A DNA stretch of 64,000 bases, from NCBI GenBank assembly GCA_026936335.1, contig JAPMXV010000010.1, positions 124,001 to 188,000 on the forward strand, read 5' to 3'. The notes under the pieces are model-generated. The model worked only from the letters and a program-made list of their open reading frames with translations, had not been told where the DNA came from and did no database searches. Shown in pieces: positions 20,833-50,059 of this stretch. This DNA is from Mantamonas sphyraenae STR306 (Eukaryota > Protista > CRuMs). The position numbers and the translations under genes were made by a program. Position 1 is the stretch's first letter, and each line of letters opens with the position of its first letter.

Positions 20833-20857
20833 ACCAAGTGAATTCAACCCCACAGAA

Positions 20858-23800
20858 ATGGAACTCGCGTACGCCGCCTTCAATGGCACGCGCAGTCTGA
20901 TAAACGGGGCAATGGACGCCATTTCGGACGATGTGGAACGGTTGAGCGTTTGGGTGTTGTCGCTGACCATGGATGACGTGGCGTCCCTCTCCCGAGAGGA
21001 TATGGGCTTCGGCGACTCCTGGCTGGGCTTCGTCGAATATTGGGTGTTGGTGCTCATTGTGGTGGCCTTTTCCGTGGTGGTCATTGCCATTGTGCTTTGG
21101 GTGGGTGTCCTCTTGATCTTCTTCCTGGGCTACCTCCTGCTGAGTTATTGCCAGCACATGGTGTTTGTGATCTACCTGCGACTGCGCACATACAATTCAA
21201 AGGGAATAGACAGCTCCAAGCAGCTCAAGCGACACTTGCAGGCGTTCAAGGGCTTGCGCGGCTTGGTGGCGTTCCGCTTTTTGAACTTTGTCACCACGAC
21301 CCAAGCCGTGCTGAACCGGCCTTTGGATGCGCTGTTCACGGCCAGCAAGTACGATACATGCAACTTGACGGCACACAAGGCGAATGAGCGTGGGTGGAAG
21401 TGTCAAATGGGCTTTGCCGGATACGACATCTCCATTCAGAATTCCCCGCTCACCAAAGTGCTGAAAAAGGGCATGCACGAGCAGTTGGAAGAGCAAATGC
21501 AGACACGGCTGCTGCCTGGTCTCATGCAACCACTGATGCAGCTGTGGAGCAACCAGAAGGTGGTGCGTTTGGAGCGAGACCTGGGCCAGCTGTGTTTCCG
21601 GGCCACCATGGCGTGGACGTTCGGTGAGACGCTCGCAACTGCAAAATCATGGCGAAAAGTGCGTGGGGATTTGGCCATGTATGTGTATGGCACGAAACAG
21701 AACCGCATGGATGGCACGTTTGGGGAAAAGAACGATTGGTACGGACAAATCAGTGACGAGATGATGCGGCTGCTGAACAGCACCCTGGCCGAATGTGACC
21801 TGAAGCCCAAGTTGGCAGACACATACCAGGTGACACGTGCGTATGTGCCCTTTCAGCGCACAGACGGTGTGGAAGAGGAGCCCTCGGAGGACCTGCCCAA
21901 TCGGGAGCGTGGCACGGCACGCGACATGACGGGCATCAGGACAGAGACGGCGGTGATGATGGATGACATGGTGCGCATACGCTCTGTGATTGATCATTAT
22001 CTGAATGTGCAGAGTGGCGATGGCGATGAAGTTGCGCCGGTTCAATTGTTCCACGGGCTTGTCGAGAACGCAATCCGTGGCAGCCAAGCCCTGGCCAGTG
22101 CCGTGGTGGCCACGTTGCATCATCTGAACGACAATGCAAACATGCAACACAGGTTTCGTGTGCTGGCCGAGGTGGAGGAGGTGACACGTGGCTGGCGTGT
22201 GCCCATCTCGCGCAAGGTGCTGGCTCAGATGAAGCATTTGCAGCTGTGTGTGCTCGAGGCGTTGCGTCTCTCGCCTCCGGTGTCCTGTTTGCACACGGTG
22301 AACATCGAGTCGTACGACAGGCCGCCCCTGGTGCAGTACCTCGTGCGCGGGTGGTTCCAGAACGATTCCATTCCCATACTGGCACACATCCCGATTGACG
22401 TGATCCATCGGCACACAGATTTGTATGGCGACGACGCGGATGACTTCAATCCGGATCGGTTGGGACGGTTGATGGAGGAAATGCGTGAGGGGCAGGAAAA
22501 GCTGATGGAGGAGAAAAGGCAAACGCCGCAGCAGGCGTTCCACTTTGGAAAGGGAAAACAGGTGCCTGCGCCACGCAGGTGCCCCTTGTTTGACAACTCG
22601 TCAGAGGCAGGCGTGTTGTCCACGGCGGACCAGGTGGACATGTGGTATCCACTCGACGACCAGGGCAAGGTGAAGTTTGCGGCTGGAAACCCGTGGGATG
22701 TCGACGAGTACGCCATGGCATACATGCGATACCTGTCGTTCGGACGCGGCAAGATGTGCCCCGTGGCTGGTCTGGCGGTGGAGAGCTGTGTCAACATTGT
22801 GGCGCACATCGTGGCTGCGCTGGGCTCCGGCTGGACGTTGGAGGACCACGAGCTTGCCAGCGTGGAGCCAGGTGGGCTGTTTGGCACAGATTTTCTTCAT
22901 TCGGACGACCGGGATTTGTGCATGGTGGTGGTCAACTTGGAGGAGGAGGCCGAGGCTGTGCAAGAGCGACGCAAGGCGATGGCGATGCAGGGAGATGCAA
23001 CCGAAGTGGGCAGCCATTGCTTGAACGCCGCTGTGGCTGCCGAAGAGGAAACACTGCTGGAAAAGCTAAAGGCAGCCGAGGCGGAGGGCGCGGAGGAGGG
23101 AGACAGCAGCGACGAGGAGGACGAGGAGGGAGACGACCGTGTGGAGAATCTGTTGGATCTGCCTCTGGAGGTGCTGATGCGTGTGGTGTCACAGTGCAAG
23201 CTGCGTGATGTGCCGTCGATTCGGCTGTCGTGTGGACGGTTGAAGGAAGCAGCGGACCAGCCGAGTGTGCTGCTGGAACTGTTTGGAGAGAGACTTCCAG
23301 CGGGGTGGGAGGAAGGGTATGCACGGGAGGTGGAGATGGGACACGGGAAAGAGATGAGCTTGATGCAGTATGCTAGGGAGCAGTTCTTCTACCACCGGAT
23401 GGTCAACCATCCGCAGCAGTATCTGGTTCAAGGGGCGTTTGCTCGCAGACGCAACGACGATGACACGGAAAACCATCAAGTGTTTCATCCACACGGCGTG
23501 CAAAGGCCGGGCACTTGGCCATGGGATCCACAGCATGAGGAGCAGGAGCAGCCGCAGGAGCAAGCACAAGATGAGGAGGCGCAGGAGGAAAGCCAGGATG
23601 GTGTGCAGGATGGTGAAGAAGAGGAGGCAGTGGAGGAAGGCGGAGGAGGAGGAAGAAAACGCACCTCCGAATGATGATGACGTGGAGCAGGCGGAGGAGG
23701 CAAGGAGGGCAAAGGAGTTGCGGGAGAGCACCGAATTGGCCCCGGAAGACCCCGGATTGTCGCTGAATCCAGAAACACACGGCGTGGTGATGCGACCTCA

Positions 23801-24728
23801 GAACTGGGATTGGAAACCGTCGGACAATGCGTACGCTGCGCTGCGTTTGATGAAGTGTTCTCAGCTGCACAGGGTGAAGATGCTTGTTTTTGCCTCGCTC
23901 GAAGACGATGGAAGCGACGACGACAACCTTCGTGCCAGCGGACTGCTACGCGAAGTGCTGTCCCGACTGAACGAGGATGCAAAGAAGCGCGAGGATGGGC
24001 AGATGGATGATGCAGACACACCACTCCCGCTGGGAAATGTCCGCTTTTACGCAGCCATGTCGGATGTGACGCCGTCCATGCGCAACTCGTACCAGTTCCT
24101 GAATGCATCATCTGCAGGGCCGCTGTTGCAACACATGCCACGTGTTGAAACGGCCATTCTGAGGGGACAAGGGCTTGAGCTACCGGCAGCGATGCGTCTC
24201 ACGTGCTTGCGTACCCTTGTGCTGCAGTCGCGCGGCCTGTCGCGTGATCTCGTGCGGGAGTTGCCCTCCCACGAGTTTCCCAACCTGGAATGGCTGGAGC
24301 TGTGGCTGGGCTCGCCGCTGTACGGCGCCTCGTGGTTTGAGGAGGATCTGGAAAAGGGGCTGCTGGCAAGGAGGTATCCCCATGGTGCCCAAAAGCTGCC
24401 AAAGCTGCGTGTGCTGGGTTTGTGTCATTGCCATGCCATCGACACATTGGTGCCCATTCTGGTGGAGAGTGAGCTGTTGCAGCAGTTGCAGGTTGTCGAT
24501 TTGTCCCTTGGCTGTTTGAGCGACGCTGCTGGCGACGATTTGAAGCGGTTGTTGCGCAAGGGCAAGAAGTTGACGCATTTGGTGTGCCAGAGACACTACA
24601 TGAGCGATGATTGGACGGAAAACGTGCTTCCAGAGGTGGCCAAAGCGGAAGGGGTGACGCTGAAGTTCAACACCGGGGATTGGGATCCGGGGCCGTTGGA
24701 ACGCACCATTGCCTATGGAGATTGGTGA
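20858..24728 (+). CDS. TM-cytochrome P450-F-box-LRR fusion, paralogue 1 (one frameshift near 23636-23642)
   Basis: TM ~21040-21180, I-helix AIRGSQALASA, EALRLSPPV, FNPDRL, heme loop FGRGKMCPV (Cys 22757-22759), F-box LLDLPLEVLMRVVSQC..., LRR FPNLEWLELWLGSPLYG in the next frame. Colinear with intact paralogue 3. Confidence 0.85.
22747..23437 (+). repeat. Near-identical tract shared with 26743-27427 (copy A)
   Basis: Direct comparison shows long identical runs from cggcaagatgtgccccgtgg through the F-box to tatctggttcaaggggcg, interrupted by one short divergent patch. Confidence 0.92.
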
Positions 24729-24810
24729 GGGATGATTGGAGTGAAGGAGTGAAGGAGTGACGGTTTTTGTGTGGAATGGACGACGTTGGCGCTTGTGCAC
24801 CCAACACAAC

Positions 24811-27800
24811 ATGGACGAAGCACTGGCGTGGCTTGGCAAGGCACACCTGCAGCTGCATATCGCCCTCAGGGAAATTAGTGGCTGGGAGGATTCCAACAGT
24901 TTGTTGGCATGGATGGTATATTTCTGTGCCAATGTCTTCTCATTGTTGGAAGAACTCACAGTGAAGATCGCCACCGACTTTTTGGGCGAGTGGTTTCCGC
25001 GCCTGCGAACTCTCTCCAAGGCAGACATGGGCTTCTCCACGACGTGGTTTGATGCGTTTGAGTATTGGGCGCTTGTGATGTTGGCGGTGGCTGCGGCTTT
25101 GGTCATTCTTGCGACTATGCTGATTGTGGCGCTGGGAATTGGGATCGTGCTCTTTGAAGGCGCCCTTGAATCCCTGCGCCAGCATGTCACACCGGTTCTC
25201 CTGCGCTGGGAACTGCAGTTGTATATGCGCAATAACCGTTATGAGCGCAAGAAACGCTTGTCGCGGCACTTGCAAGCGTTCCGGAAGGCAGAAGGGGTGG
25301 TGGACGCGCACGAACGGCACTGGCACACCATGCATGTTGAAGCTGTGATGCGAAAACCTGCAGAAACATTGCTTCTGTGTTTAACAGACCACCCGGATGG
25401 ATGTCCCCACCTGCTGGAGCACATGGTTTGCCGGGGGTGGCTGTGCCAAGGAGGGTTCTCCCTGGTGTGTCCAAACGGCGCGCACCCTCTGACACGCACG
25501 TTGGAATTTGGCATCCATGGGGATGTGGAGGCTTGCATGCAGAACATGGTGCTGCCGACGCTGATGCGACCGCTGCTGCGTCTGTGGACGAGTCGGGAAA
25601 AGATCCACGTGGAAGAGGATCTTTCGCAGCTGTGTTTCCGCGCGGTTCTCGCGTGGACTTTTGGGGAGGAGCTGTGTCGTGCGAAACCGTGGCACACCAT
25701 TCGTGAGGACATTGCCAACTATGTGCAAATGACGAAGGAGGAACGAAAGCATGATTGGGTGCAGGACATTGAGAACGAGGCGACGAACAAAGTGCTGCGC
25801 CACCTGAACGGCATGCTGAGGGAGTGTGGCCTCACACCCAACATGGCTCTTTCACCGTATGCCAACGTGCAGGTGAAGCGCACGGACGGCGGAGAGGCAC
25901 TGCGTGACGTTGCACGCCCCCGTCTTGGCACAGCCAGCAACGAAAAGGACACTGCACAGCGAACATGGATGGATGTGGAAGACGTACAGTTGCGCACAGT
26001 GATCGATCAGATGCTAGCGAAATCAGTGTCGGGCGTTCTGGGCCTTCGCAGACACTACACGTTGCGACGACGGACATGTACAAACTGATGGACGGTGCCA
26101 TCCGCGGGAGCCAAGCGCTGTGTAGCGCGGTAATGGCCACGTTGCATCACTTGGACGCCAGTGCAGAGCACAAGGCCCGTGTGGTGTCCGAAGTGGAGGA
26201 GGTGATGCACACGGGGGGATTGAAGGCGCCAATCACACGCGATGCGTTGGCAAAGATGAAGCATTTGAGGTTGTGTGTGCTCGAGGCTCTGCGTTTGTCG
26301 CCACCTGTGTCGTGTTTGCACACGTGGAAGATGCAACAGAGCGACCTGCCCTTTCACGTGCCCTCGCTCACGAGCGGATGGATTTCCAACAACAGAATGC
26401 CCATGCAAGCGCACGTACCAGTGGATGTGTACCATCGCAACGTGGAACTGTACGGCAACGATGCGGAAGAGTTCAATCCGGATCGGTTGGGACGCGTGAT
26501 GGAGGAAATGCGGCGTGGCCAGGACAAGTTGATTGCTCAAAAGACAGACAATGGGGTAGTGCAGCAGCTGCCAGCAGCACGACGCTGTCCTTTGTTTGAC
26601 AACTCGTCACTAACGGCAGAGTATGCAACGGTTTACCAGATCGACAGGTACAGCGCGGAAGATGGTGTCAAACTCATTGGACCGCACACGTGGGACCTTG
26701 ACGAGTACCTGATGGCATACATGCGATACTGTCGTTCGGGAACGGCAAGATGTGCCCCGTGGCTGGTCTGGCGGTGGAGAGCTGTGTCAACATTGTGGCG
26801 CACATCGTGGCTGCGCTGGGCTCCGGCTGGACGTTGGAGGACCACGAGTTTGCCAGTGTGGAGCCAGGTGGGCTGTTTGGCACAGACTTTCTTCATTCGG
26901 ACGACTTTGACATGCGTAGGCGTGTCGACAAGGATGTAGGCGAGGCTGTGCAAGAGCGACGCAAGGCGATGGCGATGCAGGGAGATGCAACCGAAGTGGG
27001 CAGCCATTGCTTGAACGCCGCTGTGGCTGCCGAAGAGGAAACACTGCTGGAAAAGCTAAAGGCAGCCGAGGCGGAGGACGCGGAGGAGGGAGACAGCAGC
27101 GACGAGGAGGACGAGGAGGGAGACGACCGTGTGGAGAATCTGTTGGATCTGCCCCTGGAGGTGCTGATGCGTGTGGTGTCACAGTGCAAGCTGCGTGATG
27201 TGCCGTCGATTCGGCTGTCGTGTGGACGGTTGAAGGAAGCAGCGGACCAGCCGAGTGTGCTGCTGGAACTGTTTGGAGAGAGACTTCCTGCGGGGTGGGA
27301 GGAAGGGTATGCACGGGAGGTGGAGATGGGACACGGGAAGGAGATGAGCTTGATGCAGTATGCCAGGGAGCAGTTCTTCTACCACCGGATGGTCAACAAC
27401 TTGCCAGAGTATCTGGTTCAAGGGGCGAGTGCGCTTGACAACACCGCTGATTTGGATGAGTTGCATGCCTTCCTGAGGTTTCACGCCAACGAGAATCAAT
27501 GGCCGTGGGATGTGCCCATGGGGAAGGAGACAGCGCAGACAGAGGAATCGCGCCTTTGCATCAACACAGAGACACACGGCTTGGCGCTGGCAGCTCAACG
27601 GTGGAGGTGGTCTCGTCTGGACAATGAGCACTCAGTGCAACGTGTGCTTCAATGCCCGGACCTGCCATCGCTCAAGGCGCTGGTGTTCCCCTACTGTACG
27701 TTGACACAGGCTGTACGCTTCGACGACATGGTGTCCCAGATGCTCCAGGCATTGGAGAAGAAGCAACAAGAACGTGAGGAGGGCGTGATCGATTCCAACA

Positions 27801-28509
27801 CGCCACTTCCACTCGGCAATGTTCGCTTCTACGCCGCTGGAACACACGACGACCCATGGAGTGGCGCTTTTGTCAACTTTGACAATGTCCCGTCTGCAGG
27901 ACTGCTCCTCCCTCACATGCCACGTGTGGAGACGGTCATCCTGTGCGGAGAGCAGCTGACACTGCCCACGTCGCTGCGTCTGGAATGCCTGTCCACTCTC
28001 ATCCTCAAATCCCGCGGTTTGTCGCGTACAATCGTCCAAGACCTCACCAACCACCATTTCCCCAACCTCCACTGGTTGGAACTGTGGCTGGGCTCGCCGC
28101 TCTACGGCGCGTCCTGGCTGGAGGACGATTTCGAACGGGGCCTCCTCGCGCGCAGGTATCGAGCAACGCACAGCGCTTCCCAAAGCTTCGCGTGTTGGGG
28201 TTGTGTCATTGCCATGCCATCGACACCTTGGTGCCCATTCTTGCAGAGAGTGAGCTGTTGCAGCAGCTGGAAATCGTCGATCTGTCGCTGGGCTGTTTGA
28301 GCAATGACGCTGGCGACGATTTGGTCCGACTGATTCGCAAGGGCAAGAAGTTGACGCATTTGGTGTGCAATTATCATTATATGACGCACGAGAAGACCGA
28401 TCACGAGCTAGCGGCCGAGGCAAAGGCGAACGGGGTGCAGCTGCGATTCGATCACGCCAACTTCGACCCTGGCATTGGACAGAGGGACATTGCGTTTGCA
28501 GAGCTGTGA
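24811..28509 (+). CDS. TM-cytochrome P450-F-box-LRR fusion, paralogue 2 (three 1-nt frameshifts at ~26020-26070, 26729, 28160; pseudogene or assembly error)
   Basis: Four consecutive ORF pieces reconstruct the same domain order with no in-frame stops after repair. Repairs at 26729 and 28160 restore YLSFGNGKMCPV and YPSNAQRFPK, matching the paralogues. Confidence 0.8.
26743..27427 (+). repeat. Near-identical tract shared with 22747-23437 (copy B)
   Basis: As for copy A; the offset is 3996 nt before the divergent patch and 3990 nt after it. Confidence 0.92.
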
Positions 28510-28587
28510 CCATGTGACACATGACATCATGGGAAAGGGAGCAGGAGCATGGGACGCCAACAAACAAAAAAAGGAATCCAAATACAA

Positions 28588-29859
28588 TCATGCATTGATC
28601 GATTCGTAGCCGTGACGCTCACGCCACCATCGCACGGCAAAGAAGATGTTGACCACTGCACTGATGCCAAACAGGAGGCCCAACCAGGTGGCAGCCACAT
28701 CCCCGGGAGTGGTATTGGCTCCTGGGGTGAAACTGGGCGAACCGGGTTTGGGCGTGGGCGTTGGCACACAGGCGGGTTCTCCCAAGCCGTTCCATCCCCA
28801 CGTGAGCTGGTCGGAACATGCACAGGTACCCGTGTTGCCAATGCAGCGTGCGTTGGCAATGCTTTCACAGTCTTTGCGGCACTGTGTGGTTGGCACAGAC
28901 ACAAGCTTCACCGAAAACTGGCTGCTGAACGAGTTTGCAGGCGCGGTGCCCGGCGTCAACAGGAACTGGACGTAGGCATTGCGGCCTGGAATGACATCGC
29001 GCATGTGCAACTCGCCCATGTTGAACGTCTCACCCGTGTTGGGGCTCGTTTGCTTGCTGGTGACGCTTGCACCTCCGCCTTCCGTGCCCCACAGCGTCCC
29101 AGCCGTGGTGGAGCCCGTAAACGTGGCTGCCTGCACCTTGGACACAAACTGCTTCTGGCCGTCCATGGCACTCACCACCAGGTTATACTCCGTGGCGACT
29201 TGGTTACCCGGCAGAGCCATCACCACGGTCGTTGGTTGCGGCCCAGTTGCCCCGTTGATGCCATCCGGAAATGTCACCTGGGTGTCCTGGCCCAACAACG
29301 CTTCGGTGGCCTCCGTCGACACGAGCAGCAGTGTCACGTTGAGACTGGCAAAGCCAGGCGCTTTGTTTTGCACCTTGAACCAGAACGGAACTGCAAGCTG
29401 CGTGGGCAACTGCATGCCCACGGGCACACACGGGCTCATCACACCATGGAAAGAGATGCCAGATGTGTAACCGCTGAGGTCGCCGCTGTAGGACTGCGTT
29501 CCGGACAATCCCCGGGTGGCCATCGATTGGCATGCCGCCGACGTGTCCCCCTTTTGACGAAAGTACGGCCTACCCACCGTGTACAGACCATCCTCACCCT
29601 GCAGAGACTGTGGAAACGCACCCGTGAAGATGGTCACCTGGAGCTGCGTGGCCATGAGGTGGTCGTGGTTGAGTAGTTCCGGAAACGTGGAGGCGTACTG
29701 GAGGAGGTCGATCACGAGCTCCGCTGTGGGGTCGCCATTGTCCGTGCCAGAAAAGTTGCCCGATTGATACTCGCCCCCAACGGCTAGGCCACCCACTGCA
29801 TGTGCAGACTGGATGCACAGCAGCATGATTGCAAGGAGAACTGCAGCGAAACGGCGCAT
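28588..29859 (-). CDS. Type I membrane glycoprotein with EGF-like Cys module and GYxxPhi tail
   Basis: Signal peptide MRRFAAVLLAIMLLCIQSAHA, N-glycosylation sequons, 6-Cys module CRKDC..C..C.C..C, Pro/Thr stalk, TM, and tail RWWRERHGYESINA. Confidence 0.8.
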   Translation of the reverse strand: MRRFAAVLLAIMLLCIQSAHAVGGLAVGGEYQSGNFSGTDNGDPTAELVIDLLQYASTFPELLNHDHLMATQLQVTIFTGAFPQSLQGEDGLYTVGRPYFRQKGDTSAACQSMATRGLSGTQSYSGDLSGYTSGISFHGVMSPCVPVGMQLPTQLAVPFWFKVQNKAPGFASLNVTLLLVSTEATEALLGQDTQVTFPDGINGATGPQPTTVVMALPGNQVATEYNLVVSAMDGQKQFVSKVQAATFTGSTTAGTLWGTEGGGASVTSKQTSPNTGETFNMGELHMRDVIPGRNAYVQFLLTPGTAPANSFSSQFSVKLVSVPTTQCRKDCESIANARCIGNTGTCACSDQLTWGWNGLGEPACVPTPTPKPGSPSFTPGANTTPGDVAATWLGLLFGISAVVNIFFAVRWWRERHGYESINA

Positions 29860-29980
29860 CGTCGTGTTGGCAAAAGGTTTTTTGTTTTTCTCGTGCCGCG
29901 CTCCTGCAGATCACACACCCTTCCACACTTCTTTCTCCATTTGAACCATCAATCCATGGCTACTATCCACATAGGGGGTT

Positions 29981-30313
29981 TTACTGCTCGACCTTGACCT
30001 CGTCTTCAGCCTCCTGCGGCTCGTCTTTCTGTGCCTCGTTGTCGTCACTGCCTGCGGCCTCTTTGTCCCCCTCATCCTCTTTTTGCTGGGCGATTCGGAT
30101 CACCAGTTTGACACACGAGTCGATTCCCCAGTTGTGATCCATCACGTTCTGCTCGTTGTCAAACTCGCGTCCGCCAAAAATGATTCGCTGGCATTCCACG
30201 GGAATCCCCTCATTCTCCTCCACCTGCCTCTTCAGATCCAGAAACGTCATGTGACCCTCCACCTCCACTGCATAGTGTTTCATGGTCATCGTTTCCAGGT
30301 ACTGCACAGGCAT
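29981..30313 (-). CDS. Ubiquitin/NEDD8-like domain + acidic tail, no diglycine (copy 1)
   Basis: TFLDLKRQVEENEGIPVECQRIIFGGRE...VKLVIRIAQQ followed by an E/D-rich tail. Confidence 0.82.
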   Translation of the reverse strand: MPVQYLETMTMKHYAVEVEGHMTFLDLKRQVEENEGIPVECQRIIFGGREFDNEQNVMDHNWGIDSCVKLVIRIAQQKEDEGDKEAAGSDDNEAQKDEPQEAEDEVKVEQ

Positions 30314-30417
30314 TTTTGGACGCTGTTGGTGGCGTTTGCGCTGGGTCACTCAGGGAGGTCCTGAAGGGATCCTCACGGCATTCTCATTCCTGTTTGCATT
30401 CTCATTCATTCACAATC

Positions 30418-30756
30418 TCAGTTTTCAATCTGCACATCCTCCTCCCCGTCCTCCTCAGCGTCTCCATGAGCCTCCTGAGCATCCGCTTCAGCGTCTGCTT
30501 CCGAGCCTGCCTTGCCTTCCTCCTGCCTCAACCGAAGCACCAGCCGAACACACGCATCAATGTTCCAATTGTGTTCCAACACGCTCCAGTCGTCTTGAAA
30601 CTCCCGTCCGCCGTAGATGAGCCTTTGTTGGCTGGGAGGAATCCCTTCCTTCTCCTCCACCTGCTTCTTCAGATCCAGAAACGTCATGTGCTCCTCCACC
30701 ATCACCGTCACGTATTTGCCCATCGCCGTCGTCAGCGTGTGTTCCCCTCCTTCCAT
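30418..30756 (-). CDS. Ubiquitin/NEDD8-like domain + acidic tail, no diglycine (copy 2)
   Basis: LKKQVEEKEGIPPSQQRLIYGG (NEDD8 reads VEEKEGIPPQQQRLIYSG). Ends LVLRLRQEE instead of LVLRLRGG. Shares nucleotide blocks with copy 1. Confidence 0.85.
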   Translation of the reverse strand: MEGGEHTLTTAMGKYVTVMVEEHMTFLDLKKQVEEKEGIPPSQQRLIYGGREFQDDWSVLEHNWNIDACVRLVLRLRQEEGKAGSEADAEADAQEAHGDAEEDGEEDVQIEN

Positions 30757-30798
30757 GTTTGAGTTGCCCTGTGCCCGGCGGTGCGCTCAGCCCAAACC

Positions 30799-33700
30799 AT
30801 GTCACTGGCGTTCACTCTGGAAGTCCTGTGGGAAATCGTCACCATCGTTCCTCGCCTCCTGTGGTGGCTTTGGCGTCTCCACGTGGATCCCATTGAGCAG
30901 ACGGCAGTGGAGTACCATGCGTCGTGGTTCAACGTGACGGTGGAATCACTCACCTCGTCCACGCCGGCCCAGCTTGGCTACAACACCCTCCTGCAATGGA
31001 TATACTTCAAGGGAGTGTATGCTGTCCAGTTTCTCATGGCGTTTGGCTTTGGTACCTACGTCGTCTTTCTCCTGATCATGTTTGTCGGCGCTGTGTTCCT
31101 GATGGGCGTCATCCTCGCACAAAAGCTCGTGTACTTTTGTGCGTCGGTGTTCCTGACCAAGTTTGACCCTGGCCAGGCCACACGCAATCATTGGGCATTC
31201 TTTGCCAAGCAAGCCCCCGGGGTGTTTGGTATCACCCTCTGGGGCCTTTTCACCGCCGACTGGGTCGCCCACGTGTCCATCCTCAATCCTCGCCACATCC
31301 TCTTGGCCAAGGCAGAGGTGCACTCCCGTTGGGAAATGACCCATTTCGCTTACGGACTCCTCGAAGGTGCGTACGCCCGTTGCCAAATGGGATTCAACCG
31401 AGCACGACATTTTTGCAGCACAAGCAACACCACCCTGGCTGCCCTGCGTGGATTGCCCCCTTCCATGGAGAGTGCCTTTCAATCCCGGGTGCTTCCCAAG
31501 CTCATGTCCAGCACAGTGGCCCTTTGGTCGCGTCAGGACCGTGTTCACCTCGAACGCGATCTCCAACACGTGTGTTTCCGCGCCGTCGCCTCGCTTGTGA
31601 TCGACATGCGCCTGTCCGAACCCACCCATTGGCGTGCAGTGCGTCCTCACATGCTCGAGTTTGTCCATCAACTGCGGCAGATGGCGTTGCAGGGCAATCG
31701 CTGGCGCGAAGACTACACCCGCACTGTGGAGCGGCTGTGCAAGCCAGCAGGCGAGGTCTTTCGCGCCTGTGGATACAGTCGAAAGATTGGTGCTGTGCAG
31801 AGGGTGCGTGGGCAGGGCAAGGAGGTGCCATACGACGGACTGGTGGAGCATTTGACCTTGTACGACCACAATATGGAAAACGTGGGCCACAGCAACGCCT
31901 TTCTGGGCGAGAAACCAGAGGAAAGCAGGGAACCCACGTCGATAGCCGAGTTGTTCATCCAACAGAGTGCCACCAATGTGCAATTGGAGGATTTTGTGAT
32001 TGGATTGCTAGCGGATGCTGTGCACGGATCACAAGCCCTCGCCAGCGCTGTGGTCGCCACCATGCATCACCTGCACGCAAACAAGGACCATGCACGCCGT
32101 GCCGCTCATGAGGTCCATCATCACATGGCCAAAGGTCCGTTGGATGCCGAGGGGGTCACCACCCAATTGCCCTTTGTGCGCGCGTGTGTGCTTGAGGCAC
32201 TGCGTCTCTCGCCTCCAGTCTCCTGTCTGCACAGAGGCTCTGACCCAATGAGAGAGGAGCCTCCGCTGTGCCAACTCTTGCTGCCAGACTTTCTCTCCTT
32301 TGTGGCGTTCGCATCGATGGAACACAGCTACGTGATGCCTCACCTGCCGGTTGACGTATACCACCGGCAAGAATCGCTTTATGGGCCACATGCAGATATA
32401 TTCGACCCACAAAGGCTCATGCGTGACATGGAACAACTTCAGGAGAAACAAGAAACGTGGATGGAAGACCAAGCCGTCCGGTTCGCCGAAGCCCTACAAG
32501 CCTGTCCTCCAGGGCATGATCAGATCCTTCTTCAACAGCAACGCCACCAAGCAGTCGCTGCGCGCACGCGTTGTCCCCTCTTTGATGATTCTTTCCGCAC
32601 AAGCGTCCAGAACGGGTCACTGAGCGTGGGCATGCCAAGAATGCGCAAAACCTACGCCAACGACGAGGTGCCCTTCACGCTGGACGACCATGCTCACACC
32701 TACTGCAAGTATGCATCCATGGGTCTCACAAAGAGCTGCCCAGTCGCCGGTCTCGCCATCGACAGCTGTGTCAACATCGTGGCCCACATCCTGGCCTACT
32801 TTGGCACCGCATGGACCCTCGAGGACCACGAGCTGTCAAGTGTGGACTTTGGTGGATTGTTTGGCACAGATTTTCTCCACACGGATGACTTTGACCTGTG
32901 CATGCACGTCGGTGACTTGCCACACGATGAGGCAGCGGATGTGCATGCGTGCCGCAAGATGATGATGGAGGAGGGTGGGAGCCTGGTGGTGGGCAGCAGC
33001 AACCTCATTGCAAGCATTGCTGCCTCAGAGGACACCCTTCTGGCACAGATGGAAACAGAGGCGCAGGATTCCCAGGACGAGGAGGATTCATCATCCAGCT
33101 CCGATGACGACCACGACGACGACCACGAGGAATATCACGTTGACCATCTCCTGGACCTGCCATTGGAGGTTCTCATGCGTGTGGTGTCGCATTGCAGTCT
33201 TCGAGACGTGTCATCCATCCGTCTCACATGTCGACGGTTCAAGGAGGCGGCGGATCAGCCCAGTGTCCTGCTGCAGTTGTTTGGCGAGCGCCTGCCCAAT
33301 GGATGGGAGGAGGAGTATGCACGGTCGGTACAGGAAGGAAGCACATCGGCCGATCTGATGACATGGTTCACCGATCAGTCCACCCTGCAACGAATGATCG
33401 CACAACCGTTTGGCTTTCAAAAGGACGCCTTCCAAATCTACGACAACTTTACTCCTGAGTCTGAGTTGCCCATCTCGAAAGGAGGCACCTGGCAATGGCC
33501 CTGGGAGACACGCATGGAGGCACGAGAGATCGCCGAGGCCAACAAATTGCGCAAGGAAAAGGAGGCCGCCGCGAAGGAGACGAACTCCCAAACTGGCTCT
33601 GAGGACAACGATGGCCAAGATGAGGACGACACTGATGGCAAGGAGAGCGCACATGACAAGGAGGAGGACAAGCATCCATACGAGACCAACCTGCGCATCG

Positions 33701-34683
33701 ACCCGGCTCGCCAAGCATTGCGATTCCATGTGCCCGGCTGGGGCCCTGTTGACCGCGATGCCCTTAAAGCCAAGGTGCAACGTGTGCTCAACTGTCCGGA
33801 TCTGCCGCGTCTCAAGGTCATGTTCATGTCCATTTTCGATGACACATACGAGGAAGAAGGTGGAGCAAGGGTGTCGCAAGAGTTCATGATCAGCGAACTG
33901 GTCATCCAGCTCAACCGCCGACGTGCAGATGGCATCGACACACAACCACTCTTTGCCCAACTCCGTGCCTTCCTCGGCTACTTGTGTGAAACCAACGTTG
34001 TCAATTGGGACAATGATGAAGGCGGGGGCGCGAGATGCTTCTTCCAAGTGCCATCATTGGGTGACCTGCTGCCCCACATGCCCAATGTCCAAACCGTGTT
34101 GCTTCGTGGTCAGGGGCTGCAGCTACCCACGGCATTGCAACTCACACACCTGCACACCCTCGTCATCCAATCCCGCGGCTTGTCACGCACCCTCATCCAA
34201 GAGATCACCACCCACGACTTTCCCAACCTCCGCTGGTTGGAGCTGTGGCTGGGTTCGCCCCTCTACGGTGCCTCTTGGTTGGACAATGATCTGGAGAACG
34301 GTCTCTTGGCTCGGCCAGAATCCTACCCCAGCGACGCGCGACGGTTCCCCAAGCTTCGGGTGTTGGGTCTGTGCCACTGCCACGCCATCGACTCGCTCGT
34401 GCCCATCCTGGCGGCGAGCGAGCTGTTGCAACAGCTGGAGGTGGTCGATTTCTCCCTGGGATGCCTCAGCGATGACTGCGCCGATGGCTTCAAACGCCTG
34501 CTGCGAAAGGGCACCGCATTGCACAAAGTCGTCTGCTCCGACCACTACCTCACCGAGGAAATGTGTGCGCAGTTGCAGAGCTATGCCAAGGAACACACCA
34601 CCATCACCGTGCAACTGTCCCCTGTCCGACGCTATCCTGTCCAGCCGGCATCCCGTGACATCTACTACGGCAACCACTGGTGA
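30799..34683 (+). CDS. TM-cytochrome P450-F-box-LRR fusion, paralogue 3 (intact, 1294 aa)
   Basis: Single uninterrupted ORF: TM, AVHGSQALASA, EALRLSPPV (~32194), FDPQRL, MGLTKSCPVAGLA (Cys 32737-32739), F-box LLDLPLEVLMRVVSHCSLRDVSSIRLTCRRFKEAA (~33148-33255), LRRs ~34060-34600. Confidence 0.9.
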   Translation: MSLAFTLEVLWEIVTIVPRLLWWLWRLHVDPIEQTAVEYHASWFNVTVESLTSSTPAQLGYNTLLQWIYFKGVYAVQFLMAFGFGTYVVFLLIMFVGAVFLMGVILAQKLVYFCASVFLTKFDPGQATRNHWAFFAKQAPGVFGITLWGLFTADWVAHVSILNPRHILLAKAEVHSRWEMTHFAYGLLEGAYARCQMGFNRARHFCSTSNTTLAALRGLPPSMESAFQSRVLPKLMSSTVALWSRQDRVHLERDLQHVCFRAVASLVIDMRLSEPTHWRAVRPHMLEFVHQLRQMALQGNRWREDYTRTVERLCKPAGEVFRACGYSRKIGAVQRVRGQGKEVPYDGLVEHLTLYDHNMENVGHSNAFLGEKPEESREPTSIAELFIQQSATNVQLEDFVIGLLADAVHGSQALASAVVATMHHLHANKDHARRAAHEVHHHMAKGPLDAEGVTTQLPFVRACVLEALRLSPPVSCLHRGSDPMREEPPLCQLLLPDFLSFVAFASMEHSYVMPHLPVDVYHRQESLYGPHADIFDPQRLMRDMEQLQEKQETWMEDQAVRFAEALQACPPGHDQILLQQQRHQAVAARTRCPLFDDSFRTSVQNGSLSVGMPRMRKTYANDEVPFTLDDHAHTYCKYASMGLTKSCPVAGLAIDSCVNIVAHILAYFGTAWTLEDHELSSVDFGGLFGTDFLHTDDFDLCMHVGDLPHDEAADVHACRKMMMEEGGSLVVGSSNLIASIAASEDTLLAQMETEAQDSQDEEDSSSSSDDDHDDDHEEYHVDHLLDLPLEVLMRVVSHCSLRDVSSIRLTCRRFKEAADQPSVLLQLFGERLPNGWEEEYARSVQEGSTSADLMTWFTDQSTLQRMIAQPFGFQKDAFQIYDNFTPESELPISKGGTWQWPWETRMEAREIAEANKLRKEKEAAAKETNSQTGSEDNDGQDEDDTDGKESAHDKEEDKHPYETNLRIDPARQALRFHVPGWGPVDRDALKAKVQRVLNCPDLPRLKVMFMSIFDDTYEEEGGARVSQEFMISELVIQLNRRRADGIDTQPLFAQLRAFLGYLCETNVVNWDNDEGGGARCFFQVPSLGDLLPHMPNVQTVLLRGQGLQLPTALQLTHLHTLVIQSRGLSRTLIQEITTHDFPNLRWLELWLGSPLYGASWLDNDLENGLLARPESYPSDARRFPKLRVLGLCHCHAIDSLVPILAASELLQQLEVVDFSLGCLSDDCADGFKRLLRKGTALHKVVCSDHYLTEEMCAQLQSYAKEHTTITVQLSPVRRYPVQPASRDIYYGNHW

Positions 34684-41971: not shown

Positions 41972-44900
41972 ATGGCCGACTTTGCAGACCTCACTCTGCC
42001 AGATGACCTCATGGTCGACGACGACGACGTCTCACCCGCAGAGCCATCCGATGCATCGCAGCCTTCTGCAGCGGCCTCCGCACCCTCTTCCGCCGCTGCT
42101 CCGTCAGACTCTGCCAATGACACCACCACCAGCACCCCATCCTCATCCTCATCCTCATCCTCCTCATCGGCGTCCCGTGGCACTTCCGACGATGACTTTT
42201 CCGCCTCGGTGCAAAACACCGTCGTGCACAAGACTCTCAAGGAGTTGCGTGACACCCTCACCGACGCCATCGTCCACAAACTTGACCGTCCTTTCAAACC
42301 CACCAAAGGCACCAAAAAGGTACGTTGGTTTGCTCCCACCCACCCTCTGCGAACCATATATCTCCTATCTCTTCTTTGTGCTCTCTCTTTGCGTCCCTGC
42401 CCAACCTGACCCTTCCCCCTTTCTCCTCTTTCCCACCCCTCCCCCTTTGCGACACTCCAACCTTCCTCCCTCCCAACCCCCCACAGGGCGATGAGGACGC
42501 CTACATCATCCGCCAGTGGTCTGGATTCCCTCGCAACGAAGACTGGTACATCAATCTGCTGGGTAAGTCGCTTGCGCTGTGTGGCCTCGTTTTCTCAGTT
42601 TTCATTTCGACTCTTCTTTTGGCAGTCGTCGCTGACCCTCCCGTCTGCCAACCCCCCTGTGGCCACCTTTCCCCGCACTGCATTGTGCCCCTTGTGACCG
42701 TCCATCTACGTCCCTTGGGATCCATCCTGTCTTCCATGGGTGTCCGATTGACCCTGGCCCTGCTGTGCAGACGTAATCAGCGCCCTCAGCTCCGGCTGTG
42801 CCCAGGCCATGTGCGACCTCGTCATTCCCTTTTGCCCTCGTTTCAACGACCTCGAAGTGTCCCGTTCCTTCAAACGCACCGATGACTACTCCAAGGCCTG
42901 GAACTTCACCACCTTTCTCTCCACCATCCCTGGGTTTGACATCTCCCGCAACAGGCTCCAGGCAGAGATCATTGTGCGTTCCCTGGGTTCGGTTCCCCTT
43001 TTTTTGTTGCCCTCTGCAGCCCCAAGGACTCACTCACACACACACACACACAATCACTTACTCACTCCATCACTCACTTGCTCGTCAACAGGAGGCTGTG
43101 ATCGACGTGGTGTCGGCCGACATGCTGACATGTGCGTTGCAGAGCGGCAGTCAGGAACAGCTGAGTGACACCTCGCTGGAGTGGATGCGCCAGTTGGCCT
43201 TTCTCTACTTCAAACCACGCAATGTGTCACAGATGACCATGCCCCTGGAGCTGTACCAAGCCTATGCGCGTGAGTTCAACGACCAGTGGGCGGTCATCAT
43301 TGAAAAGTTGAGCCAGTACAACTTCCAGCCCGTGTTTGACCAGTTTGTCAGCCTGGTCACGGGCACCCTCACTGTGGTGGAACCCGAAGAGTTGGAGGCC
43401 TACTTCCTTGGCGTACGCTTCCTCAAGCTACCCCCGCTGATTGAGACGGACGAAAGCAGCATCAACACTGCCCAGTCGTACCTCAGCACCATCCTGGGCA
43501 TCATCACAGACAACGCCATTGCCAACAACAAGAACGTGCCCTTGCGTCTGGCCCAGGGCCAAATCCTCTACCACGCCCTCAAGCAGCTCGACTTTACTCA
43601 CATCGAACAGGGCAAGGCCTTTGGGCTGTTCAACCAGGTCGAGGGCATCTACAAGCAGGTGGAAACATGGGCCAAGGTCGATGCCCTGCGTCCCATTGCA
43701 AATGACATCCTGGCCGTCATCTACTCCCGCTCCCAGAGCAAGTTTTTCGACAAGAACTGGACCCCGTACGTGAAAAAGACCCTGCTCAAGGGTCTGGGCA
43801 AGGACAAGACACGCGCTGTCTACCTTGACGCCCTGCGCATCATCCTGCGTGGTCGCTACCGACCCCTCATTGTCGGTGCAGAGGTGTCCTGGAGCACAAA
43901 GACCAACGAGTTGCGCACGGCCATCCACAACGAACAACGCGACGGTCCCTCCTCACGCGCCACCGCAGACATGGTTTACATCGAAGCCGCAGGCAACGCC
44001 ACAGGCGCCCAGTTGGACCTCTATCCGGGCCCACACAACTTTGCACACATCGATCCGCGTGTGTATGCGTTCACGCTGCGTCGCTCGCTGCCGGGCAAGG
44101 AGCGCGAAGACATGCTTGCTCAGGTGGCCGCCGAGGTGTTTCCCAAGAAGGGACTGAGCAAGATTGAGCAACACATTGGCGTGTGCACCGAGATTGCCCT
44201 TCAGATGGCTGCCCATTCGCTCAAGTTTGTCCAGGGCACTCTCATTCCCACCCTCATGGCCCCAAAGACAAAGTGCCAACACCATTGGATTGTGGGCATC
44301 CGTGCCATCCGTGCCATTCTCAGCTCCTCCACTGGCTTCATGACCCATGCCTACACCATGAATCCCAGCGACAGCGACGGCGATTCCCTCCAGGATCTCC
44401 AGCAGCAGCACGGGTCCTCCTCCTCCTCCTCGCCCTCCCTCACCACCCAGGCTTCCACCACCGATGCCATTGGCACTCTGCTCACCAAGAGTGGTTTTGC
44501 AGCCGCTGTGGCTCCCCTGCTGGTGGAAGTCGCATCGTTGTGTGAGGAGCAGGCAGGCTTGGGCGAAGTCGGCAAACGTGTCACGCGTCTCCCGCTGGCG
44601 TACACCTTCAAGGCAGCCGGCCCCACAGGATTCGACGCATGTGTGCTACTCAAGAGCAAGAAGCACCTGTACCTGCAAACGTACCGTGAGCTGATGCTGT
44701 GTTTTGCCGAACTGCCGGGTGACTTTCTGGCATCCTACGGCCCCGCCGAATTCAGCGTGCTGTGTCGCCTGATGATGCACCAGGACGAACAGCTGGCAGT
44801 GGGGGCAGCCGAGGTGGTGCATGAGTTGTTTGAACGCTATCCGGACAAGCGCATGCCGCTGCTGAAGGGCTTGTTGCGCACAATGACCAACCCTGTCTTC

Positions 44901-47900
44901 CAGGACCCCGTGTCCCAGACCGTGTACCTGGACATGCTCAACGAGATGTTTGCCATCTGGGCCCGTCTGTTGCCCTACGAAATGGAGCTGGGCGAGGAGG
45001 AGGGTGGCGTCGTGCCCGTGTACGACGAGGCAGTGTACACGGTGGAGTCGCTTGCCCTCCTGGGTCTGTGCAGCTACGACTACAAGGTGCGCCAATTGTC
45101 CCTGGACACCTTGCAGGCATCGGCACACATGTGCGATCTGGTGGCATTCTACAACGATAAGTCACGCATCATGAGCGAACAACACATGTGGGCGCTGCTG
45201 GACGAGCAGGGAGAGGACATCATGAAGGCAGCCACGCTGCGTGGCCAAGCCGAGGTGAACCCCATTGTGGATAGGGACCCCGAATTGCACCCGGTGGCTG
45301 TGACCACAAAGCTGACGGAAGTGGCCACCAGCATGGGACAGTCCCACCTCTGGGTGCATTGTTTGGCCCAGATTGGCATCGAGTTGGTGCGCAACAACAC
45401 CTTTAAGCTGCTTCTGCAACTGCGCGATCTCCTCTTCAACGCCCTCTCCAACCTGGACAAGATCCTCGTCACCGATGGCCATGGCATCAGCCCCAACGGC
45501 GGCACGGGGGGCAGTGGCGACGGAGGAAGCAGCAGCAGCAGCAGCGTAGGCAGCAGCAGTATGATGGGGGGTGGTGGTGGAGGAGGTGGAAGCAGCAGTG
45601 GGTTGATGGGTGCAGGTGGGTTGGCTGCCATGGATGCAAGTGCACGCAACCCACGCAACGAGAACCAATTCTGGGCCCAGTTGCACGTGTTGCTGTTTGC
45701 CGTCGCCGGCGTGCCTGCATCCGACACCACGGGCATTGGCAAGCAGATTGAGACGCAGTTGCGCGAGTATTGCGACAGTCTGTGGCCGCAGGTGCTTCCG
45801 TTTGGCAACCGCCTGACGCAGACGGCAGTGAAGCAGGCGGTGAGCTCGCTGCACTGGAACAACGTCCTCACGGTGTGTGAATCGCTGATGCGCTTCTACA
45901 CAAAGGAAGGCAGCAAGAAGAAGCGAGCGCGCGTGTTGCCCTCGCTGACCATGCTGCTGCGTTGTGTCACACGCACCCATCTGTTTGACTGGGCCCTGGA
46001 TGCCCACCGTGGACGGTTGTTGCCGCTGTTGGTCACTGCCATCCATGAGAACGAGGCCATGCTCTTTGGTGCTGGCGCCAAGTATACCTGGGGCCCACAG
46101 GACCGCACCCACAGCATCGACTTTGCCCTGCTGGTGAAGAACGTGGCCGAGGCCCTGTTCACTCCGGTGCCCCAGAATGTGTACATGGGTGCAAAGCTGC
46201 AACGTGTGCTTGTGCCCATGGGCCATGCCCTGGGAAGGGAGTGGACACGTGAGGCACGCATGCAAACACTGCACCTGCTGCGCTCGTGGACGGGCCAGGG
46301 GAGCAACTCACACGGCCGCGTGGCAGCTCAGATGGAAGAATTCAAACGCATCTCTGCCATCAGCAACGCACGCGAACGTGTGCAACTGGCCGACGAGTTT
46401 ACAGAGTATGTGGTGGAGGTGAACACGTCTTGCTTCATGGCAGCAGCTGCCCTGGTGCGTCTGGGTGACCTGGGTTCGCTCAAGGACGACCTCAACGCGG
46501 GACTGTTGCCATGGGCAGAGGCGGCGGAGGCACAAGACCATTATGTGTTGCGTTGGTTGCTGGCAGACCACACGGAACAGTTGCTGGACAACTATGTGCG
46601 CAAGGTTCACAGCGACGCCACCTCGTCGGCCCTGTACTTCCACGCCATCTGTGACATGCTCATCCCCATGTACTCGCAGACCTTCCTGCGTCCCACGGGC
46701 ATGGGCGAAACGTGGAACTTCCTCCAGTACATGGAAGAGACCGGTGCTGCGCAGGATGCCCAGGTGGCAGTGCGTGACAGGGACGACTCGGCCGCCCAGG
46801 GGATGCCCCCCATGGACGACCACGCGGCACAGGCGGATGAGGCGTTTCGCAATCTGTGTGTCACCCATCGTGCCAAGTTTGTGCTGATGGCATTGGCCAA
46901 CATGGCGCACGCATCGCTCACCGTGCGCTACCGTGCCTTTGCCCTGCTTTGGCGCACCGTGGCCACCCTGACACAGGTGGATTGGAGCGAATGGAACGCA
47001 TTCATGGCCAAGTACCGCCTTGTGGTCCATTCGCAGAATGTGAACAAGCCGGCGGCGGTGGCACTCGAGATGTCGCAGTGGTTGGCCGACGCGTGTGTGG
47101 ACATGACGGAAGAGATGTTTGTGGAGTTGTTTGCAGTGAGCAAGGAGCTGAACCGACAGAGCACAGAGGACACGGACAAGCGATGCACCTTTCTCATGCG
47201 TCTCATGGTGCCCTGGTGTGCACGCGTCAATCTCAGCACCCAATCCCACCCGGGATGTGTCACTCTGTCCACGCTCAAGAAGTATGCCTTCCTCGACGCC
47301 CTGTTTGACATCAGCAGGCAGGCGTCCATGCTGGGCCAGCAGGTGGTGGCCACCTGGCAATCGCTTGCGGCTGTGGTGCCTGCCGAAGCCGCTGCAATCA
47401 GCAGTGGCAGTGGCAGTGGCAATGGCGAGGACAGTGATGCACCGCACATGGACGTGGCTGTGCCTCCCAATTTGGGAGTGATGATGGAGTTCCTACTCAG
47501 GCGCAGTGTGTTTTCCAACGAAGACATGAAGTTCAGCAAGAGTCTGGTGTTCTTCCTCTACAGCAGCCAGCCCGAGGGCACGGTGGTGCCTCTGGTCCAA
47601 CAGCTCACCCTGGAACGCTTCACCGAAATCCAACGTTTCAACCAGGAGAACGAAGAGTACATGCGGGAGCTGAAGAAGAAGCGACGTCGTACGCTGGGCA
47701 AGGACTGCAAACCTTTCTGGAGAACAGGCCCGAGAAGGAGGATCTGGTGCAACGCAACATCATCAGCGACACCAGCCTGGCACCCTCGCTCCAGGCGCAG
47801 ATGCGATCGTTGGAGACGTCCCAACGCAACGATGCGCTCATGCAACACCTGGGCGAACGGCCGTCGGCCGAGGATCTTGTGGCACGCAACATTCTGGAAG

Positions 47901-50059
47901 AGGACGAATCGCAGTACTTTGCCGAACCTCCGCCTCCTCCCATGATGGATGACGACGGTGCCATGGGGGGAATCCCGGATGACGGAGACTTTGACGACGC
48001 CGACTTTGGTGCACCGCCCCCCATGAGTGACGAGGAGGAGGATGCACAGCAAGACACGAGCGTGTTGGATGCCCTGTCATCGGCCACGCTGGATGTGCTG
48101 GGTGATTTGGGTGACCTGACCGGTGGTGGCAATGCCAACGACGACGGTGTTGGCGAAGGCCAGGGAGGAGGTGTTCGTTTTGCCGACTTGGATCTGGGCG
48201 ACGAGACGGTTGGAGGGGATGCCGGTGCCGGTGCTGGTGGCTTTGACATGGCAGCAGAGGGATTGCAGCAGGTGGGTCTGTTCCATGACTTTCCGCCAGA
48301 AGATCCAAAGATGGCCGAGGAGAAGCGATTTGCAGCGGTGGCCATGCTGAGTGATCTGTTTTGCGAGTCGATGCAGTCTCTGTCGCCGTACATGTATGTG
48401 TTGGTGCACTTTGCAGTGATGCATGTGGACGAGGAGGATCTGACGAAGCGGGGCAACCTGAGCACACTGCTTGTGAACATCCTGTACGTGTGCAGTTCCA
48501 TGGCCCACATGATGGGTCGCACCGAGGGTTTGGACAGTGCCTTTGTGACCCTGACCAGCCAGCTGCAGACGCCGTCGTTCCGTCTCAAGTGGAGCGAGGC
48601 CCTGGCGTTTGTGGAACGCCATCGCAAGGAGCAGGACAACCTGCGCATGGATCCAGCGGAAATGGTGCGCAACATCCTCGTGCTGTTGGATGCCATCAAC
48701 CCGGATATTGGAGTGAATTGGGGACGGGAGGCGTTCAAGTGGGCGGTGGAGAGTGGCCACCCAGCCATGTTCACGAAAGCCCATCTCATCTATCGCAGCC
48801 TGCGCACGCCTGTGGATGCGCAGGCGTTGCGTCAGCTTGTGTTTTCGCTGGAGGTGGCTGTGACGGATTGGGAGACGTATCTGGAGGTGAGCAAGGGGAT
48901 GCGTCCAGAGGCGCTGAAACAGCTGCAGTTTACGCAAAAGTTGATGTCCACACGCTCCAAGAGTGGCATCCGACGCATGGATTCGTTCCAGGTGGCCATG
49001 GCGGCGGTGGGGCCGTCGGTGAGTGCAGAGGCGTTGTTGGGTCGTGTGAAGCAGTTCATGGAGACACTGCTCATGATGGCGGAGCAGTTCCAGAGCCAAG
49101 GGGAGCTGCACACGCATTTGCCAGTGATCTTTTGGGCGGGTGTGGCTTTGTTGTACTCTCGCAAGCAGATCTACGAACCCACACTGCAGTACCTGCTGCG
49201 TGTGTTGGAGTATCGCGATGAGATGACCCAGTGGGATGCCAAGGGCATGGAGGTGCCTCTGCTCATGCAACCCGTGGACAGTGTGCTGTCCATGAACACG
49301 GCATACACGGGCATGCAGCCCCTGCTTCTCAAGGGCCTCCTGCACACAGAACGCAGGGTACGCACACGCACACGCCGTCTTATCTCCGACGTGGCCATGC
49401 TCACCTCGTTCGATGTGGTGGACCAGTCCCCTGCACGCTACATGACCACCGTGATGGCCCTTCTGCCCTCCTTGTACGTGGCATTGAAGTCACCCACCGC
49501 TGAGGCTGGCTCGTCGGGCAGTGTAGAGGAGCTGCGACAGCCTGCAGAGATTGCTGCACGCCTGGGTGCGGCCCTGAAGCGCAGCGACGAAGGTGGCATC
49601 AACGGAGACATCTTTGGCGAGTATGCAAACCGTGAGTACGTGCAACAGCCCGAGGTGTTTCTCAGCGACCTGTGCTACAATGTGTCTGCGAGCTACTTTC
49701 CAGAGTATGCCAAGGAGTGTGCCGACATCCTCGTCGCCTTTTACGACCTGGAGTGGGACACGCTGGAGTACAAAAAGTTTGTGCTGGACTGCACCCACTC
49801 CTTCCTGACGCAAGAGACGGCGGCCAGCACTGTGCGTGCGTTTGGCAGCGTACTGTCGCGTGCCCTGGAGGACATCCACGTCATCCCGCTGCGCCAACGC
49901 GTGCAGCGGCTGATCGAAGTGGCCAGCGCAAACGCAGGCAGCGACAATCTGGACGAGCTGCTGGACCGCGAGGGCGGTGTGGCCTGGTTGGAGGAGGACG
50001 AGGCACGCAGTGGCCGTAGTGCCTTGCGCCACGTTGCTGCTGTGTTGCTGGCTGAGTGA
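41972..50059 (+). CDS. Furry/Tao3/Mor2-like large HEAT scaffold with two internal RPEL motifs; 4 exons, frameshift at ~47705
   Basis: Exons 41972-42319, 42487-42562, 42771-42973, 43092-end. C-terminal WGREAFKWAV..AHLIYRSL and IFWAGVALL..YE..L resemble the MOR2-PAG1 C region. Confidence 0.7.

Follow-up and report, generated by a model that had tools for sequence, protein, structure and literature searches.

Several F-box proteins are known that place a sensor domain before the F-box and a repeat domain behind it. FBXL5, for instance, combines a hemerythrin domain with an F-box and leucine-rich repeats (LRRs), senses iron and oxygen, and serves as the receptor for IRP2 within a SKP1-CUL1-F-box (SCF) ubiquitin ligase, and ZTL, FKF1 and LKP2 carry a LOV domain, an F-box and Kelch repeats. 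Cytochromes P450 are among the best-studied enzyme folds, and where they occur naturally as fusions (the reductase fusions CYP102/CYP505, CYP116B, XplA, the Ppo dioxygenases and the mimivirus protein CYP5253A1), their partners are redox or metabolic enzymes. Here we describe a locus of the deep-branching protist Mantamonas sphyraenae STR306 in which a P450-like domain is fused to a putative adaptor of the ubiquitin system. Within a stretch of 64,000 nucleotides (positions 124,001 to 188,000 of contig JAPMXV010000010.1, hereafter the window), three tandem genes encode proteins with a membrane anchor, a P450-like domain, an F-box and an LRR domain, in that order. The P450-like domain has lost residues needed for ordinary P450 chemistry while being maintained by selection, and we suggest that it may have become the input domain of a ubiquitin-ligase receptor.

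The three genes lie on the same strand at the positions given in the initial annotation (Table 1); they are old duplicates, and no fourth copy was found in the host genome. Their fusion is real and not an artefact of annotation: copy 3 is, as had been claimed, a single reading frame without a stop that spans all domains, and the same domain order recurs in three diverged copies. The P450, F-box and LRR matches expected for the copy 3 protein were all obtained, with Pfam p450 falling just under its cut-off (E 1.5e-4, 21.1 bits against 22.8) and copies 1 and 2 scoring above it (23.6 and 26.5 bits). The acidic linker between the P450 region and the F-box is likewise present. Two features turned out to be less conventional than first described. 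The supposed N-terminal transmembrane segment does correspond to a hydrophobic anchor, but one that forms a stretch of 35-55 residues beginning 50-80 residues into the protein, unlike an ordinary N-terminal signal anchor; the charges on its flanks, more basic on the C-terminal side, weakly suggest that the P450, F-box and LRR domains face the cytosol. Similarly, the P450 landmarks do follow one another in the correct order, but the I-helix and the Cys loop are degenerate.

The identification of the N-terminal domain as a P450 homologue is borne out by Pfam, PDB, ESM and HHalign, and judged by these comparisons it is a real but remote homologue. Matches by ESM language-model features were p450 in 30 of 30 cases, and HHalign aligned a profile of the three copies to 33 ordinary P450s from helix D to the PERF motif (scores in Table 1). 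In an unsupervised MAFFT alignment with copy 1 placed first, helices C, D, E, I and K, the PERF motif, the Cys and helix L all fall in register with the controls, and ExxR, the PERF-like Arg and the axial Cys before helix L, aligned in this unsupervised way, are invariant in all copies. With copy 3 placed first the C-E region slips, so that the register there is less certain, and the A/beta1/B part upstream both aligns and models poorly. A deletion of the B'-C region was considered and dropped, since the unsupervised alignment has helices C, D and E in register. The best matches are to CYP51, CYP170A1, CYP102/505 and CYP97, at 10-19% identity, and no clan can be assigned.

An important aspect of this homology is what has been lost. 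We compared the three copies with 32-33 ordinary P450 controls and found the I-helix acid-Thr pair absent throughout, with the Thr that all controls possess replaced by Ala and the acid by Gln, while the Ala above the heme has become Arg in copies 1 and 2 and His in copy 3. The Arg/His of the C-helix WxxxR motif is Thr in all three copies, while the beta1-4 Arg, retained in copy 3, has given way to Thr in the other two. The Cys loop, canonically FxxGxRxCxG, is shorter by one residue, carries Lys for Arg, and has Val instead of Gly at Cys+2 in the copies where this position is readable; that 33 of 33 controls have Gly there merely restates the canonical motif, because the pattern by which they were chosen requires it. 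Among the hallmarks of a P450 monooxygenase (I-helix A/G-G-x-D/E-T, the FxxGxRxCxG loop, WxxxR and the beta1-4 Arg), only the last was found, and only in copy 3. Given the loss of the acid-Thr pair, the WxxxR Arg and the Cys+2 Gly, the domain is unlikely to be a normal monooxygenase, and the earlier suggestion of a conventional P450 that converts its ligand, be it lipid, xenobiotic or gas, is not supported, since the oxygen-activation residues and most of the heme-propionate residues are gone.

The domain has also gained sequence. An insertion of ~85 residues separates the PERF-like motif from the Cys loop; only 15% of it is invariant across the copies, yet it keeps RCPLFD in all of them. This motif fits the pattern K/R-C-P-hydrophobic of heme regulatory motifs, as found in Hap1 and ALAS1, a resemblance that we treat as a lead and not as a test. 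The insertion sits on the face with which P450s dock their reductase. One alignment placed the Cys of RCPLF at the axial position in copies 1 and 2; we ranked this assignment lower, as the second Cys is the one that has an FG-type motif before it and an L-like helix (pLDDT, the predicted local distance difference test, of 90+) after it.

In comparisons between the paralogues, the ratio of non-synonymous to synonymous substitution rates (dN/dS) is 0.05-0.35 over the whole gene. At dS values of 1.2-2.2 it stands at 0.13 for the segment from the Cys to the end of the domain, 0.22-0.27 from helix I to the meander and 0.13 for the LRR, and the F-box reaches 0.05 at a dS of about 2, a pattern of strong purifying selection on all domains. 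Such low dN/dS at high dS indicates that the altered P450 residues are kept by selection and are not decaying. Within the P450-like domain, conservation is highest in the Cys-to-end segment (63-68% between copy 3 and the other copies).

The F-box was described from the outset as clear, and it is: PF00646 scores 31.7, 21.0 and 22.0 bits in the three copies against a curated cut-off of 20.5, the domain is 85% identical across them, and the LPxE motif, which contacts CUL1 in Skp2, is invariant. The host encodes a clear SKP1 (E 6e-29) and several cullins, and F-box matches in its genome number at least 73. About 4.5 kb from the canonical SKP1 there is a further SKP1-like match, which is divergent (C35:33786-33926).

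The C-terminal LRR, on the other hand, is present as claimed but is not built of typical eukaryotic FBXL repeats, and instead matches the bacterial STM4015 family (Table 1). Its scores against NF038076 are 110-117 bits, where membership needs 275, and cover positions ~90-270 of the 290 in the model, with the first ~90 unmatched; by this comparison it is a homologous domain rather than a member of the STM4015 family. The homologues are proteins of ~300 residues with 28-35% identity, two of which were read in context and lie in bacterial operons with sulfatase and radical-SAM genes, and 585 stretches of bacterial and archaeal genomes match the domain. Among host genes, this locus alone gives a high score (E 1e-33; the next LRR genes reach 1e-8). 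A quick tree with two other host LRRs as its eukaryotic comparison places the three copies, as a single clade on a long branch, within the bacterial family and well apart from those two; the myxococcal neighbours are on long branches, so we name no donor. Transfer of a bacterial gene would be the simplest reading of these relationships. All three copies carry an invariant Cys-His-Cys-His in the LRR (34372-34383; residues 1192-1195 of copy 3), absent from the bacterial homologues, which may bind a metal or may simply be the Cys ladder usual in the LRRs of F-box proteins.

Table 1. Features of the P450-F-box-LRR locus, in window coordinates (aa, amino acid residues).
Feature	Position	Strand	Details and basis
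Copy 3, intact 1294-aa TM-P450-like-F-box-LRR gene, no intron needed	30799..34683	+	ORF (open reading frame) and domain searches
Copy 3 hydrophobic membrane anchor	31015..31155	+	aa 73-119; one or two helices, basic C-terminal flank; Kyte-Doolittle peak 3.07, flank charges
Copy 3 degenerate P450-fold domain	31168..32946	+	aa ~124-716; ESM features 0.97; HHalign 98% probability, E 1.2e-14; alignment register
I-helix HGSQA in place of AGxET	32023..32037	+	Copy 3; RGSQA in copies 1 and 2; alignment with controls
K-helix ExxR (EALR)	32194..32205	+	Copy 3; intact in all copies
Meander region with ~85-aa insertion between PERF-like motif and Cys loop	32419..32712	+	Copy 3; low pLDDT in model
RCPLFD within the insertion	32569-32586	+	Copy 3; invariant
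Cys647, aligned with the heme-ligating Cys	32737..32739	+	Followed by Pro-Val, not x-Gly
Copy 3 helical, then acidic linker	32947..33147	+	
Copy 3 F-box with LPxE motif	33148..33267	+	aa 784-823; PF00646 E 1.2e-7
Copy 3 LRR solenoid, bacterial STM4015/2RA8 type	33739..34683	+	aa ~981-1294; NCBIfam STM4015 NF038076 E 8.9e-32; PDB 2RA8 E 4.4e-9
Copy 1, same architecture	20858..24728	+	Cys at 22757; F-box begins at 23150; single frame break, near 23638
Gene-conversion tract of copy 1, Cys loop to beyond F-box	22754..23407	+	Near-identical to 26750-27397 of copy 2
Copy 2, same architecture	24811..28509	+	Cys at 26753; F-box begins at 27140; three -1 breaks

How might such a protein work? By analogy with the sensor-F-box-repeat proteins, we favour a membrane-bound SCF substrate receptor in which the P450 fold, no longer oxygenating, would loosely bind heme and/or take up a hydrophobic ligand and thereby control how stable the receptor is or how firmly it grips its substrate, a reading on which our own confidence is evenly divided. 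The anchor would hold the protein in the endoplasmic reticulum (ER) or another endomembrane with the remainder in the cytosol, where the F-box would engage SKP1-CUL1 and the LRR would engage substrates. The P450 fold could hold heme loosely via the retained Cys, perhaps also via the Cys-Pro motif of the insert, and/or the old substrate pocket could take a membrane lipid or a prey-derived hydrophobic compound; occupancy would then change how stable the receptor itself is, as with FBXL5, or how well the LRR can reach its substrate. It is the architecture that suggests gating by a ligand. The more specific proposal, that a non-catalytic heme- or lipid-sensing P450 directly gates a membrane-bound SCF ligase whose F-box is eukaryotic and whose LRR derives from bacteria, and that the protein is a receptor and not an enzyme, is one we put forward more tentatively. 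The initial annotation had the P450 domain either binding or converting its ligand; we favour the first option and, with the catalytic residues lost, find no support for the second in the sense of an ordinary P450.

Several observations weigh against this receptor reading. The lost propionate ligands, together with the loss of the Cys+2 Gly, may mean that no heme whatever is bound. Two of the three copies are frame-broken as assembled, leaving only copy 3 intact, and the family is known from one genome. AlphaFold run from the paralogues alone failed (pLDDT 37). With a P450 alignment as guide, it reached a predicted template-modelling score (pTM) of 0.72, with pLDDT of 85-96 for C-E, I-K and L, but this result is, owing to the guidance, partly circular. 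The same circularity attaches in part to the matches of the guided model to CYP51 and CYP3A4 (VIA Z 24-25; root-mean-square deviation of 3.9 over 385 residues to CYP51); its template-modelling (TM) scores to Atlas P450s are 0.58/0.72. What the model shows is compatibility with a P450 fold, not independent proof of one.

The alternative that survives best, though we still think it unlikely, is a heme-free pseudoenzyme that serves as a protein-binding module or decoy, its P450 fold docking clients at the ER (genuine P450s or the reductase that serves them, or else a microbial effector that targets P450s) for the SCF ligase with no small-molecule gating. Most heme contacts are indeed gone and Val stands at Cys+2; conserved segments of surface type include the beta3/beta4 region and the insert; and both F-box and LRR families are expanded in the host genome. 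Nevertheless, neither the axial Cys nor its neighbouring residues vary between the copies, and selection on them is strong, which a ligand explains better than a bare scaffold.

Less probable again is an active P450 of a non-monooxygenase kind, a peroxide-shunt enzyme like CYP74, CYP8A or CYP152 that acts on fatty-acid hydroperoxides or acids and whose activity or turnover is tied to the ubiquitin system by the F-box-LRR part. Enzymes of this type lack the I-helix Thr and place a polar side chain above the heme; CYP74 also has an insertion that blocks reductase binding. The Arg or His over the heme, the retained Cys, the proximal insert and the beta1-4 Arg of copy 3 would all suit such an assignment. 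However, these enzymes retain the Cys+2 Gly and the basic propionate ligands, which are mostly lost here; the residue over the heme differs between the copies (Arg or His); and no CYP74, CYP8 or CYP152 entry appears among the best sequence or structure matches listed.

Not every F-box protein is part of an SCF ligase, yeast Rcy1 and Ctf13 being examples, and the F-box at this locus might bind SKP1 outside an active SCF complex, or be a mere self-destruct tag, so that the protein would not be a substrate receptor at all. The bacterial type of the LRR, its distance of about 160 residues from the F-box with an acidic stretch between them, and the divergent SKP1-like match in the host could be read in this way, but the invariant LPxE and the order of F-box then LRR, which is usual for receptors, make it a rather improbable account.

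This leads us to the frame breaks. That of copy 1 lies in the purine-rich acidic stretch between F-box and LRR, while those of copy 2 are near 26030-26060, 26730 and 28158; two of the latter coincide with a doubled base in the paralogue, which fits the usual consensus error of long reads. When copies 1 and 2 are read across, with an X at each break, neither contains an in-frame stop. Introns were considered as the cause and set aside, with no convincing GT-AG candidates that would spare conserved sequence except a possible one of 26 nt at 26026-26051; genuine introns in other P450 genes of the host are about 90-190 nt long and have clear signals. In their recent conversion tract, copies 1 and 2 differ by 6 synonymous versus 2 non-synonymous changes in 204 codons, a 12-codon island excluded, and this mostly synonymous pattern indicates that both copies were under selection until recently. 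In view of this selection, the doubled bases, the lack of in-frame stops and a similar -1 break in a Furry gene of the window, assembly error is somewhat more likely than pseudogenisation, although four breaks in 7.6 kb exceed the local background. The FALCON assembly (25.06 Mb, 78 contigs, 59% GC) was built from PacBio RS II reads and polished with Racon and Pilon (PMC10492846). That the whole family might be an assembly chimera or a set of decaying pseudogenes, as four frame breaks in a long-read assembly could hint, is very improbable in the face of three independently diverged copies with a common domain order, 1294 stop-free codons in copy 3, bridged copies without stops and low dN/dS throughout.

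The architecture is apparently undescribed so far. No full-length homologue was found in databases of 5.8 and 1.84 billion proteins, in which unsampled protists would be missed. The P450 part found no relative in the larger of these, one weak ordinary P450 fragment (E 2.8e-4) in the smaller, only two weak ordinary P450 matches at 21% identity in JGI metagenomes, one of them with a canonical Cys loop, and none in viral contigs. A viral origin was rejected, as viral contigs gave no matches and the neighbours are ordinary eukaryotic genes. The statement that no P450-F-box protein has been characterised agrees with the literature searched, which omits most subscription papers; a database listing of an uncharacterised fungal F-box/P450 gene model is reportedly given in a review, a mention that the literature search did not confirm.

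The window lies on contig 10 of the 25,061,354-base, 78-contig eukaryotic assembly, and the neighbouring genes encode TANGO6/RTP1, an armadillo protein, a copine, an importin beta and SCAMP. TANGO6, copy 1 and copy 2 are separated by same-strand gaps of only 25 bases (20833-20857) and 82 bases (24729-24810), which leave scant space for promoters and untranslated regions. Between copies 2 and 3, on the reverse strand, lies an orphan of 423 residues (28588-29859) with a signal-peptide-like start, a Cys-rich EGF-like stretch, a C-terminal membrane helix and no Pfam match. Also on the reverse strand are two tandem small ubiquitin-like ORFs (29981-30349 and 30418-30756; Pfam ubiquitin E 4e-12 and 6e-14) with acidic tails and without a C-terminal Gly-Gly, the second of which is head-to-head with copy 3, their first ATGs 42 bases apart. 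The Furry/MOR2-PAG1 gene (42798-50059, forward strand) contains RPEL repeats, to our knowledge an unusual presence in Furry, and its -1 break near 47700, inside an RPEL motif, is probably an assembly indel. Elsewhere in the genome, two ordinary P450 genes stand amid five F-box genes (C27:109101-134901), and the one at C27:133747 is the only other match in the host to the degenerate P450 profile (E 1.3e-3). An intron-containing P450 gene (C22:121493-122580) has an I-helix that reads G-H-R-P-T across an exon junction, with Arg-Pro at the acid-alcohol pair.

If the receptor reading is true, the locus would be a natural example of a P450 fold put to work in signalling or in the quality control of proteins, and the design known from FBXL5 and ZTL would gain a third type of sensor. 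Because the P450 pocket is highly druggable, it could also offer a natural template for the control of protein degradation by small molecules, and it would open a first way into the function of the uncharacterised STM4015 family of LRR proteins. So far the system is seen in one species of a little-sampled lineage, the CRuMs.

Compared with known systems, the closest parallel is FBXL5, which has the same order of cofactor-binding domain, F-box and LRR and likewise draws its sensor from a metalloprotein fold, heme-free or heme-type, whereas here a P450-like domain would provide the input, a membrane anchor is present, the LRR is of STM4015 type and no homology was found beyond the generic F-box. 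ZTL, FKF1 and LKP2 share the logic of sensor, F-box and repeat but have another sensor and another repeat and are soluble. With microsomal P450 monooxygenases (PF00067) the proteins have in common the membrane anchor, probably the fold, ExxR, the PERF-like motif, the axial Cys and the L helix, and differ from them in the lost acid-Thr pair, WxxxR and Cys+2 Gly, in the ~85-residue proximal insert and further inserts, and in the F-box-LRR fusion. CYP74, CYP8A1, CYP5A1 and CYP152 resemble them in the missing I-helix Thr, the polar residue above the heme and, for CYP74, an insertion near the Cys loop, but retain strong heme contacts and are stand-alone enzymes. Natural P450 fusions likewise use the P450 as one domain of a longer chain, with redox or metabolic partners instead of an F-box-LRR. 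The LRR resembles the STM4015 family and Bacteroides fragilis Q64V53 (PDB 2RA8) in its repeats, at 25-38% identity, and in the LELWLG and DxSxG motifs, while the bacterial members are proteins of ~300 residues that stand alone or are fused to WGR. Overall, we infer by analogy that the Mantamonas proteins work like the sensor-F-box-repeat proteins, to which they are non-homologous outside the F-box.

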